This document shows, in pieces, positions 47,626 to 52,022 of a stretch of 64,000 bases of DNA. A model generated the notes under the pieces. The model was not told where the DNA came from, did no database searches, and saw only the letters and a program-made list of their open reading frames with translations. The position numbers and the translations under genes are program-made. Source of the stretch: Octopus sinensis (taxonomy: Eukaryota); contig NC_043007.1 of NCBI RefSeq assembly GCF_006345805.1, forward strand, positions 19,282,001 to 19,346,000. The letters are read 5' to 3'. The first letter of the stretch is position 1; each line of letters starts with the position of its first letter.

Positions 47626-47710
47626 TCGACAAAATCCAAGCAGCTGTGTTTGATGAGACTCAGTCCTGCGTTCTCGTTGAACGAAGACATGTTGTAATGA
47701 AGTCTTCTAG
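47626..47710 (-). CDS. PLCB4: PLC-beta Y-box alternative exon B: (A)[27 protein letters not shown](D)
   Basis: Long polypyrimidine tract then tttgcaag|CT acceptor, GTCGA|gtatccttg donor (U12-type); 85 nt, same phases as exon A, open frame, 16/29 aa identical to exon A. Confidence 0.88.
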
Positions 47711-48428
47711 CTTGCAAATAAAACCAAAAGAAAAAAAGAAGAAAAGAAAAAAACGACACCAAAAAGAAGTGAAAATAAATAAAAACACAACAGAAACACA
47801 AAAAAAAACCAATGATTCATGCAACAACAACAAGAACAACGACATTAATAATTAGCAGCAACATCAATGGTAAGAGTAGTGAGAAAAAAAAAACACAAAC
47901 ATGATAGAAAGATGCAGAGAGATGAGAGAGAGAGAGAGAGAGAGACAGAGAGAGATGGAGAGAGAGAGAAGGAGAGAGAGAAGGAGTGTGTATGTGTGTA
48001 GTTGGATTGCTTCTATAAACGGTCAAATGTCTCTTGAAGCACAGACAGTGTCCAGACACTGTGTGACTCTGGACAATGTCCACACTTCTACACGCTGAAC
48101 AAACAAATATATGGACATGTGTATGTTTGTGCATGCATGTGTGTGTATGTTTGTGTGTGTGTGAAGGCGTGTGGCCTAGTGGTTAGGCTATCGCACTCAT
48201 AATCAGTAGATCACAGGTTCAATTCCGTGACTGGGTAGCATGTTGTGTTCTTGAGCCAAATGCTTCATTTCGTGTTGCTGCAGTCTCCTTTCAATTAGAG
48301 GGCAATTTTGGCCTGCTTGCCTGGCTAGTGGGGTGGCATCATTTAAAGGCTAAAATGGTGTAAAGCTGGTGTCGAGTGATATTTAACAACAACTAACAGC
48401 TTTATTGAACATGTGATCATGTGATATA

Positions 48429-48824
48429 TCTATATATATAAAGCTGAAGTTGTCTGTGTGTGTGTGGCAGGTTTGGTAGCCTTCAACTAACACTATCTCC
48501 TCTGAGACCCTGCGGCACAAGTTGACCAAAATTGAGAGTATGATAGAAGAAGGCTTGCTCTTCCTTCCGTAGAAGAAAAAATTCAAATCGGACCATGTTA
48601 ACACCAAAAATTATTTACATCAAAAAGGTGCCTTTTTTTCTATGAAAATCCCTATTTTTTTACGATTTTTTGATTGCTGTGTCACCATTTTTTGGTGTAT
48701 TTCAACCAGAAAAATGTTCACTTAAAGAGAATAACAAGCTACATAATGCAAAATTTTTACTTTCCAAAAATTCTAATTCTAAAGGGTCGAAACAAACCCG
48801 AGCAACGCCGAGCAATACTGCTAG
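48429..48824 (+). mobile_element. Non-autonomous Helitron
   Basis: 5' TC(tatatatataaa), 3' hairpin-like cccgagcaacgccgag then CTAG; sits between A and T. Confidence 0.8.
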
Positions 48825-51348
48825 TTTAAAAATAAAATGGACTCTCCCCTCATTAGACGACGGATGAGAGTTTGGCATTTTCATGCTGAACAACGACACA
48901 GATGATTTGTATATATATATATACGATGGGCTTCTTTCAATTTCCATCTACCAAATCCACTCACAAGGCTTTGGTCAGCCCAACAATCATCAGAAAAGGC
49001 TGTAAGGAATAGCTTGGTGCAATCGCTTTTCCTTCTGGAAGTCTGAATGTGCCACATCCATTCAGCTGTTTTTATATCTGCTGTAAAATCCAGAATGAAA
49101 TTGTCCTGTTTGGAACCGAGGGAGAAAAACTTTTTAGTTCACCAGAGTTACATCCCTTGGATTGAGATCTGGAAAAAAAGCCCATCATAGTATGTTGGAT
49201 ACTTACTTGTAGGGTGGGGCTGGACCAGGTAAGAGAAGAGTCATGTAGTCAAGTGGAGTGAATAGGGATGGGAGATGGTTGCGGAGGTAGTCAATATGTA
49301 TTTATGTATGTACATGTACCACAAATGGATGTAGCAAGTCTTATATTTATTCCTCAGATTTTAGATGGGGGAAATAGCTGAGATGTTGCTAACCAGTATG
49401 CTAAGACAAACCTGCACTCATGTGGACAGGATTAGAAAATTTCGCTCCTACGATTAAGATAGGTGCCTGGGTGAAAAGAGTTCTTTAGTATGATCCTCTT
49501 CTCAGCCAAGCAGAACCTGCAACTCCAACTACCATAAAGGTGAGGCCTATATTTTCTTACTATCCTCTGTCACTGTCTCTGTGTGTGCGTGTGTATATAT
49601 ATATATATATATATATATATGGGGGTGGGTATGTATATACCTGCACAGATGTGTATGAGTGTGTATGCATATTGATTGTAATATATGGTATGTTTTAAAA
49701 ACAAATTTAAAATATTACATTTAAATTAATATCAAAAGAAAACAAGTTAGATTAATAGCAAAAATAACAAAATTAAAATTCACAAAATATTTTCAAAGTT
49801 GTTAAAAGAAATCCAACAGAAACAATAACAACAACATCAGTAACAATGATAATGAATATCTTTTGTTGTTGTTTTTTTTTAACTAGACATAATGCTAATT
49901 ACCTGTAACTATTGACTGCATTACCTTTAATTATTTACTGGCTCTGGAGGAGATGGAAGTTAAAGTTTGACAATTTAGTTAGAAATCAGACCATTGTTTT
50001 AATGGATTAATTAATTAATCAATCAATCAACCAATTAATTAATTAATTAACTTGAAACAGCCTCTAATATTCTAGAACAAGACCTGTTCTCGGTAGAAAG
50101 GTGAATGAAATCTAAAATGTCCCTTGTCAATCCATCGAATCCTGTTTCAATTCCTTAGTATTTCTGGACCTGTGGAACAGTTTGCAACTGGGAAGATGGC
50201 TGTTTTGGGGTACGGACGTTGTGGCAATAGGGAGAGAGAAAAAGAGAGGTAGGTAGGTAGGTAAGTAGGTTGATAGGTAGGTAGATAAATTTATAAATAG
50301 GTTGGTAGGCCACTAAGTACCCAGATAGGTAGGTGGGATCCTTACTGTAAAATGGGTGTTGTTACAAGTACCCAGATTGGTAGGTAGGATCCTTACTGTA
50401 AAATGGGTGTTGTTACATCACCGTTATCTGTTGTCCTGCCCCGACAAGGAACTGCAATGACTTTGGGGCTGAAGGAAAACAGTTACAGGTAACTGCCTTC
50501 AAATACTGATGTGGGGTGGTCAACAATTATGATGACCTCTCTGTCCAGTATTTAGTCTGACACTGATTTCACTGATATTGCTGGACAATGAAAGATGAAA
50601 CGAATCAACTACAAAGAGAAGTGCCCAATACTGAATTAAATGCTGCAACCAGTTTTTGACTGCATTGGGTTTTTTTTCCCATTACATGTGAACACACACA
50701 CACACACACCTATAGGTTTATCAAAGGCCCTCTGCACAGTTTCTTGATTGCAGCTGCCTGACGAATGAGGACATAAAACTCGGAGTAGCAGATTTTGTGT
50801 TGTTTTTGTGGCTTTAATAATAAAAACAAAACATATTACTCTACCTGTGGCATTCGAGTACTATTTTTTTCCCACCTTGTTTCGCATTTATGTGCTTACT
50901 CATGTACATATACATATCTATATCTATCTGTCTATCTATCTATCTATCTATCTATCTATCTATCTATCTATCTATCTCTCTCTCTCTCTCTCTCTCCTCT
51001 CTCTCTCTCTCTCTCTCTCTCTCTCTCTCTCTATATATATATATATATATATATATATATATCAAAATACAGACACATCTAAGACCTGTGCTGCTTTGTG
51101 ACTCTGGTTATTAATATCTGGCACAATAATATTTACCTTTCAATAAACAGTAAGTGCTGCGTTCTCTCTGCAGCTTGTAAAACAGATGCAAAGAATCTCT
51201 GATGAGGCTTTAATTAAAAACAAAACTAGTTAGTTCAACCTGTTTTATGAACTGCTGTAACGCTTTGTTTGAACCAAGGGGGTCTACCTATTAAAAGTGT
51301 ACACACTCACACGTGCACACACAGACACACACACATAATACCTAGATA

Positions 51349-51714
51349 TCTCTCTATATATAAACGGCAAAATATGTGTGTGTGTGTGTCCTTTATACAA
51401 ATCCACAATTTTTCAGTTAGAGGGCTCGCACTTTCTATGATCATTCAAAACTGTCCAAGGGTGGTCGTGCACATCTTTACATTTCCCCAGTCACCCTGCA
51501 AAGCCATTCAAAAATCAATAGAAGTGACTTTTTTGTGGATTTTCTATCCAAAACCCAATGAAAATGCCCGAAACTTGATACGCCAATTGAATGCCAGCTA
51601 GCTGTATGTGATTGGTCGGAGATTTGGACAGTACTCGAGTGTATGTGTGCACGCACGCAGCTGTATATGCATGCACGAGCACTATGACCTGGTGTTGCCG
51701 GGTCACAGTGCTAG
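51349..51714 (+). mobile_element. Non-autonomous Helitron, different family
   Basis: 5' TC(tctctatatataa), 3' hairpin gacctggtgttgccgggtc then acagtgCTAG; sits between A and T. Confidence 0.8.
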
Positions 51715-51929
51715 TACAATATATAAACAAAAATGGGGGAGAAGCGAGCGGTGCTAGGGAAGGCCAGGGTAGCAAAATCAACAGATTGATGTTTGTTTGC
51801 AGGGTTCCTAATGCTGGATCATTCTGAGTTCCCATCAGGGCCCAACAACATGTAGAATTGGAGTTTTGATTTTTTTCGTTTCTCTTCTTTTTTTTTGTTT
51901 TTTTTTTCTGGTTTCAGTTTAGAACGAAC

Positions 51930-51937
51930 AAGGATAC
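51930..51937 (-). promoter_or_regulatory. U12-type 5' splice site GTATCCTT after exon A
   Basis: Sense gtatccttgtt; U12 consensus RTATCCTT. Confidence 0.9.
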
Positions 51938-52022
51938 TTGACAAATTCTATAGCCTGAGTTTTTAAATAGCCTAAACCGGCGTTCTCGTTGAACGACGAC
52001 ATGTGGTAATGGATGTTTCGCT
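51938..52022 (-). CDS. PLCB4: PLC-beta Y-box alternative exon A: (E)[27 protein letters not shown](N)
   Basis: cttccag|AG acceptor, GTCAA|gtatccttg donor (U12-type); 85 nt, phase 1 to 2; very close to vertebrate PLCB4 [29 protein letters not shown]; missed by the ORF track. Confidence 0.95.

Follow-up and report, generated by a model that had tools for sequence, protein, structure and literature searches.

We analysed a 64-kb stretch of the Octopus sinensis genome (contig NC_043007.1; hereafter the window, numbered from its first letter), in which a gene of the PLCB4/norpA type, encoding a beta-4-type phospholipase C (PLC), is read on the minus strand and contains a tandem duplication of one exon in the Y half of its catalytic domain. 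We call the two copies, in the order of transcription, exon A and exon B. The exons concerned are as follows.

Positions 55261..55402, minus strand: constitutive upstream exon, in which the X-Y linker ends and the Y box begins, with a U2-type donor and 81-90% amino acid identity in all fetched comparison loci.
Positions 51938..52022, minus strand: exon A, 85 nucleotides (nt), phase 1 to 2, the canonical, slow-evolving copy, with a U2-type acceptor.
Positions 47626..47710, minus strand: exon B, 85 nt, phase 1 to 2, the divergent copy, with a U2-type acceptor and a long polypyrimidine tract.
Positions 40973..41045, minus strand: constitutive downstream exon, carrying the catalytic Arg and Tyr and the acceptor of a U12-type intron, and continuing the frame as (N/D) plus 24 residues.
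Positions 33614..38421, minus strand: further constitutive exons, which complete the Y box and encode the C2 domain (38421-38318, 37240-37138, 35090-34926, 34154-34055 and 33718-33614).

An earlier, sequence-only reading of this locus had placed two 85-nt exons of identical phase between the exons at 55402-55261 and 41045-40973, and re-reading the minus strand confirmed this arrangement down to the splice borders: the upstream exon ends as GCGGAAG/gtacttca in phase 1, exon A lies between the acceptor ...ttccag/ and the donor /gtatccttgt, and exon B between the acceptor ...ttgcaag/ and the same donor. Intron lengths are 3238 nt between the upstream exon and A, 4227 nt between A and B, and 6580 nt between B and the downstream exon. 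As also claimed earlier, A and B are identical at 16 of 29 amino acids; they are identical at 52 of 85 nt and have a 12-residue block in common. In a tblastn search with either peptide, A and B were the only copies in the window, and since they match each other with an E-value of 8e-9 while the next-best hit has an E-value above 0.06, the pair is not a chance resemblance. A tandem pair of homologous exons that agree in length and phase and are flanked by shared constitutive exons is a mark of a mutually exclusive cluster, and translation of the joined exons agrees with the earlier argument that the frame demands one and only one of them: immediate stop codons follow when A and B are both joined, and equally when both are skipped. 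Steric hindrance as the basis of exclusivity was rejected, given the 4227 nt between A and B.

The assignment to the PLCB4/norpA type, likewise made in the sequence-only reading, was upheld by domain content and by similarity. When the five exons past the downstream exon are added, the spliced product of 292 amino acids contains, with either alternative exon, a full PI-PLC-Y domain (Pfam PF00387; 147 bits with A, 145 bits with B) followed by a C2 domain (PF00168; 30 bits). Its top named matches are annotated as 'phosphodiesterase beta-4', namely in Lamellibrachia (85% identity) and, as PLCB4, in Polypterus and Acipenser (86-88%), whereas matches to beta-1, beta-2 and beta-3 are lower (50-64% identical). 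C-terminal exons at 32261-27157 match the Biomphalaria gene, and we found no exon 5' of 55402 within the window. The Lamellibrachia match itself (GCA_022478865.1, 3001-3984 of the fetched locus) is an intronless PLCB4 Y box plus C2 with an A-type exon, adjoining separate open reading frames (ORFs) with PH-domain (PF17787) and PI-PLC-X matches, and resembles a processed retrocopy or a cDNA-like insertion; we therefore discarded it as evidence on exon structure. PLC-beta4/norpA serves as the effector in rhabdomeric (Gq) phototransduction and in a large part of neuronal Gq signalling, and among invertebrates the gene has a central place in Gq signalling.

The sequence-only reading had derived mutual exclusivity from the frame. 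That logic stands, but it had overlooked a physical mechanism in the splice sites themselves, namely U12-type donors on both alternative exons and a U12-type acceptor on the downstream exon:

Positions 51930..51937, minus strand: U12-type 5' splice site GTATCCTT of exon A (motif scan).
Positions 47618..47625, minus strand: U12-type 5' splice site GTATCCTT of exon B (motif scan).
Positions 41057..41065, minus strand: branch site TTCCTTAAC of the U12 type; its end lies 11 nt from the 3' splice site, and it is not followed by a polypyrimidine tract.

Directly 3' of both alternative exons stands GTATCCTTGT. When the minus strand was scanned from 38 to 58 kb, RTATCCTT occurred only twice, exactly at the donors of A and B, and TCCTTAAC was found just 5' of the acceptor of the downstream exon. 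The intron thus shows what identifies a U12-type intron, an RTATCCTT 5' splice site and a TCCTTRAY branch site about 10-15 nt from a 3' splice site that lacks a polypyrimidine tract. The other side of the pair is different: its sites are all U2-type, both the donor gtactt of the upstream exon and the acceptors of A and B, whose pyrimidine tracts are long and which have no CCTTRA in the nearest 60 nt. A U12 branch site and acceptor are found at the downstream exon only. With U2 sites flanking the pair on one side, U12 sites on the other, and an intron of hybrid type separating the copies, this is the layout known from the JNK genes.

Incompatibility between spliceosomes is accepted as one way of making exons mutually exclusive (PMC4165533, PMC5740500), and we propose that it operates here as follows. 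The Y-box exon is followed by a U12-type intron of ancient origin, whose donor GTATCCTT has been retained by each duplicate. The upstream exon would be joined to A or B by the major spliceosome, and the chosen exon would then be joined to the downstream exon by the minor spliceosome. Joining A to B would be disfavoured as pairing a U12 donor with a U2 acceptor, and splicing of the upstream to the downstream exon as pairing a U2 donor with a U12 acceptor. Since donors of the U12 type require a branch site and an acceptor of that type, and U2 donors require U2 acceptors, splicing could legally proceed only by upstream-A-downstream or upstream-B-downstream. Any leakage product would be frameshifted, 85 not being a multiple of three, and then removed by nonsense-mediated decay (NMD). 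That the U2/U12 layout enforces mutual exclusion is thus the most likely explanation under established splicing rules. The layout would still allow upstream-A and B-downstream joining on one molecule with the hybrid intron retained, and therefore exon choice must still be regulated, probably by tissue-specific factors.

We compared the window with other loci fetched through ORF fragments of the upstream exon. The exon is present in two copies in the window, in Biomphalaria (L008), in Elysia chlorotica (L011) and in three ENA assemblies (L001, L013 and L015), in three copies in two further ENA assemblies (L002 and L014), and in one copy in the sea cucumber Apostichopus (L009) and in a vertebrate-like contig (L016). 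Thus, the duplication is present in molluscs and other invertebrates, and the exon is single in the deuterostome loci examined. All 19 exon copies in nine of these loci are exactly 85 nt long and open, with AG before and GTATCCTT after; the single copy in L016 is likewise followed by GTATCCTT. None of the 19 has a CCTTRA motif within 60 nt upstream, and the upstream donors are all U2-like, resembling GTAAGT. On the other side of the intron, the downstream exon of all nine invertebrate loci is preceded, at a distance of 9-15 nt from the 3' splice site, by CCTTAAC or CCTTGAC; in L016 the site is divergent. The U2/U12 layout is consequently invariant in all eight multi-copy loci (the window and seven others). 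A GTATCC donor also stands directly after ...EFV(N/K) in vertebrate-like genomic ORFs and in L016, and since the U12-type intron is common to echinoderm, vertebrate-like and mollusc loci, it is ancient. It has been lost in insects, because in insect genomic ORFs (P0006-8, P0013-14) a single Y-box exon is fused to the next exon.

Two side observations concern these comparison loci. In the three-copy loci (L002, 11549-18970; L014, 10798-13838), copies 1 and 2 can each be matched between the loci (identities of 21/28 and 22/28), copy 3 has diverged strongly, and the most canonical copy is the middle one, not the first. In addition, the deposited gene models of Biomphalaria (GCA_030265305.1, 10001-16158) and Apostichopus (GCA_002754855.1, 10001-23530) split PLCB4 into separate genes, exactly at the U12-type intron or duplicated exon; gene predictors appear to break their models here because of this layout, which is likely a systematic annotation failure.

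In the mollusc-like loci the first copy is the canonical, slow-evolving one (comparisons of A between the window, Biomphalaria, Elysia, L001 and L013 give 23-26 identical residues of 28, and comparison with a vertebrate sequence gives 23), and the second is divergent with shared derived residues. Across species, B-type exons carry the signature Ala1 and [LMI][IV]KH.C (KH at positions 21-22), with Cys24 in 11 of 11 B-type exons, Ala1 in 9 of 11 and KH mostly kept. The residues that follow the shared block in second copies are listed below, together with additional B-type ORFs that phmmer recovered library-wide when queried with the contiguous B ORF; each of these ORFs continues into YP, the read-through of a GTATCC donor.

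Window, exon B: SLIKHSCLDFV.
Biomphalaria, exon B: QMIKHRCIDIL.
Elysia, exon B: QIVKHQCIDMV.
L013, exon B: RLIKQACMLFV.
L001, exon B: GLIANNCIEFV.
P0256, genomic B-type ORF: 25/28 identical to B of the window.
P0258, genomic B-type ORF: ...SLIKHSCMEFV.
P0264, genomic B-type ORF: ...SLTKHSCVQFV.
P0259 and P0261, genomic B-type ORFs: ...GLIKHSCVELL.
P0271, genomic B-type ORF: GLIKHTCVELL.
P0276, genomic B-type ORF: ...GLIANSCIEFV.

Exon B, with the same signature and position, therefore does occur in other species, in two gastropods and in several further assemblies. Using the Nei-Gojobori method on the 27 full codons, we found that the proportion of nonsynonymous differences (pN) between B exons is 0.14 for the gastropod pair and 0.25-0.37 across classes, at a proportion of synonymous differences (pS) that is saturated (0.7-0.9); between A exons pN is 0.05-0.13. 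A and B of the window are themselves saturated at synonymous sites (pS 0.77), and thus the duplication is old. The constraint check proposed along with the sequence-only reading accordingly came out in favour of B as a maintained coding exon of great age, which is constrained, though 3-5 times more loosely than A.

These results bear on two alternatives. In the first, B would be a silent, decaying duplicate, with A alone ever used. Such a pseudo-exon would fit the 3-5 times faster nonsynonymous evolution of B and the outcome of our protein searches, in which the B-isoform peptide retrieved A-like fragments only, the B read-through ORF gave no matches, and the 292-residue query returned proteins of at most 511 amino acids with no cephalopod and no B-type exon among the matches. 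Yet at that age B has kept its 85 nt, its open frame, its AG with a polypyrimidine tract and a perfect U12 donor; signature-bearing B-type exons are still found in gastropods and in no fewer than six further genomic ORF clusters; and the match of B to the PI-PLC-Y profile is as good as that of A. As length, frame, both splice sites and a private amino acid signature are retained and pN is far below pS, we conclude that B is maintained rather than dead, and regard a silent duplicate as quite improbable. In the second alternative, B would be a regulatory, unproductive exon that lowers PLC-beta4 output instead of giving a distinct enzyme, an idea to which the faster evolution of B lends itself. 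The joined upstream-B-downstream sequence is, however, fully in frame with every catalytic motif present, and a poison exon would need neither a conserved amino acid signature nor a low pN/pS. This possibility seems to us very remote indeed.

Within the Y half of the catalytic barrel, the two exons code for the first strand and helix, and they differ at 13 of 29 positions. Four of the differences (A to B: E1A, N3R, I4L, H7N) precede the strand, and nine (G18S, Y19L, L20I, T22H, Q23S, A24C, I25L, E26D, N29D) lie in the helix after the catalytic serine. The 12-residue active-site block is identical in A and B, and the Arg and Tyr of the SRIYP motif are in the shared downstream exon. By alignment to PLC-delta1 and PLC-beta2/beta3, the serine of the block corresponds to Ser522 of PLC-delta1, the phosphate-binding serine; the solved PLC-beta structures for comparison are those of beta-2, beta-3 and PLC21 only. 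The earlier suggestion that the isoforms differ around the active-site face is therefore not supported: since the active-site block is identical and the differences are in its flanks, mainly in the following helix, a changed catalytic chemistry or a difference in catalytic residues is unlikely, and an altered packing or regulatory surface of the barrel would be more plausible.

As to what might set the choice between A and B, we counted all 4096 hexamers without bias in the 40 nt preceding each of the 18 duplicated copies. The top rank, above the pyrimidine-tract words, goes to TGCATG, with 8 occurrences observed against 0.43 expected (Poisson 2e-8), in 7 of the 18 exons. The corresponding RNA motif UGCAUG, bound by Rbfox-type regulators, occurs twice near the pair in the window:

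Positions 52038..52043, minus strand: Rbfox-type motif UGCAUG, located 21 nt 5' of exon A (hexamer enrichment across loci).
Positions 47818..47823, minus strand: UGCAUG motif at -113 from exon B (motif scan).

Elsewhere TGCATG stands before the distal copy, in Biomphalaria (B, -11), L001 (-23), L013 (-40 and -22), L015 (-31), L014 (copy 2, -17) and L002 (copy 3, -36), and it is also found after the first copy in L001 (+18), L002 (+20) and L015 (+39). The enrichment thus places (U)GCAUG close to these exons across species, as in exons regulated by Rbfox, and UGCAUG by the acceptors points to an Rbfox-type regulator as a candidate. Rbfox acts by position, with an upstream site repressing and a downstream site enhancing the exon. 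Purely as a hypothesis, cells that express Rbfox would preferentially use the first copy in most species, with the reverse possibly holding in the octopus window.

The introns around the pair also hold long repeats. A SINE (short interspersed nuclear element)-like repeat is present in at least seven intronic copies, and copies in opposite orientations form inverted repeats of 74-123 nt with 85-88% complementarity:

Positions 45344-45466 against 54311-54433: inverted repeat bracketing A plus B (SINE-like copies).
Positions 45364-45437 against 48910-48983: inverted repeat bracketing exon B alone (SINE-like copies).
Positions 45342-45454 against 45506-45618: local hairpin (SINE-like copies).

Possible roles of these inverted repeats would be in exon choice, in back-splicing or as substrates of RNA editing; the inverted repeats that we saw were all of repeat origin. 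On the transcript strand, a (GA)n tract 3' of A (about 50939-51017) and a (TC)n tract 5' of B (47903-47981) are complementary over about 79 nt (about 75%), and their pairing could draw the ends of the A-B intron together, but this is probably a microsatellite coincidence. Separately, the intron between B and the downstream exon holds the remnant of a mariner-type transposase (42036-42266, minus strand; Pfam Transposase_1), interrupted by stops. No Rfam family and no tRNA gene were detected anywhere in the window (1-64000).

In a further alternative, both exons are used but exclusivity and choice depend mainly on frame and NMD, or on RNA structure or looping, for which the inverted repeats are candidates; the U12 signals would be inherited and have no part in exclusivity. 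In favour are the exon length of 85 nt and the bracketing of B, and of A plus B, by long inverted repeats. The repeats, however, are transposon-derived and unlikely to be shared with other species, whereas the U2/U12 layout is the same in every multi-copy locus; moreover, the two mechanisms are compatible with each other. We consider this alternative unlikely.

We thus favour, with a probability of roughly three in four, the reading that A and B are a pair of maintained coding exons of which exactly one is used, exclusion being achieved by the U2/U12 layout together with frame and NMD. Several points weigh against it. The incompatibility of U2 and U12 sites is not absolute, and the stalled product, with upstream-A and B-downstream joined and the hybrid intron retained, is not prevented. 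No B-containing transcript or gene model was found in our protein searches, and all the spliced sequences or models we retrieved (from Elysia, the Lamellibrachia retrocopy, arthropods, nematodes and vertebrates), almost none of them molluscan, use an A-like exon. UGCAUG precedes A in the window but the distal copy in other loci. Finally, the named multi-copy comparison loci are those of the gastropods Biomphalaria and Elysia, and the tree of the conserved exons is too flat to assign phyla. A search of a literature library turned up no description of this exon pair.

The sequence-only reading had also raised the possibility of a switch ancient in protostomes. This is borne out for molluscs, by the two gastropods, and not for protostomes as a whole; on the sequences compared, the switch appears ancient in molluscs and probably in other lophotrochozoans. 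A wider proposal, which we offer tentatively and would sooner doubt than assert, is that of an ancient (Cambrian or older) lophotrochozoan PLC-beta4 switch, hard-wired by the minor spliceosome and set by Rbfox, in which B would have a distinct regulatory property and be used in particular cell types. The conserved KH.C helix face of B might, for example, alter autoinhibition, membrane docking or redox/pH sensitivity, and the cell types might be, for example, photoreceptors as opposed to other neurons or muscle. If a conserved switch in the catalytic barrel were real, molluscs would tune PLC-beta4 cell by cell.

Among known systems, Drosophila norpA belongs to the same gene family and also has two isoforms (subtypes I and II) from alternative exons, one retinal and the other generally expressed. 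Kim et al. reportedly found in 1995 that this exon pair changes 14 residues at about 130-155, in the N-terminal region and not in the Y box. The sequence-only reading had taken B to be norpA-like and had asked whether the octopus pair is the same exon as that of norpA; neither idea held. B is identical to an insect sequence at 13 of 28 positions, against 22 of 28 for A, with the corresponding values being 14/28 and 23/28 for a vertebrate sequence and 15/28 and 18/28 for Artemia, and the insect genomic ORFs, with their single, fused Y-box exon, offer no alternative pair at the homologous position. We therefore rejected this identification; with the norpA position as reported, the octopus pair is an alternative exon of its own, independent of that in norpA. 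Two papers cite norpA as having two isoforms (PMC3772025, PMC7345481).

The U12-type intron of vertebrate PLCB genes has the same GTATCC donor, but L016, like the sea cucumber, has a single exon and no alternative pair; mammalian Plcb genes are known to contain minor introns, with Plcb1, Plcb2 and Plcb3 listed (PMC8848931, PMC7507305). In Rbfox-controlled exons, such as those of C. elegans egl-15 regulated by FOX-1/ASD-1, UGCAUG lies near the acceptor of one copy, as it does here, where in several loci it also lies just after the other copy. Unlike in egl-15, the case here consists of motif enrichment alone, and the motif position differs between the window and the other loci.

The layout itself is that of MAPK8/MAPK9/MAPK10 (JNK) exon 6a/6b (7/7a) and Tmem87b exon 11/11a, where two homologous tandem exons likewise lie beside a U12-type intron. 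Mapk9 exon 7/7a and Tmem87b exon 11/11a are mutually exclusive around a minor intron (PMC6717393), and in these genes hybrid U12/U2 pairings are thought to forbid the joining of the copies, with the choice being tissue-specific (PMC6717393; PMC4165533 and PMC5740500, citing Letunic 2002 and Smith 2005). The octopus pair differs from JNK in lying in a PI-PLC TIM barrel rather than a kinase, in its 85-nt exons, which add a frame/NMD safeguard, in its presence in molluscs and other invertebrates and not in the deuterostome loci examined, and in its candidate motif, UGCAUG, where JNK has the YCAY of Nova. A human-wide survey lists five clusters of the spliceosome-incompatibility type (PMC5740500). 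The PLCB4 locus is a new example of this known but rare mechanism, and it extends the very short list of U2/U12-enforced mutually exclusive exons by a clean and evolutionarily replicated case, with natural one-, two- and three-copy versions.

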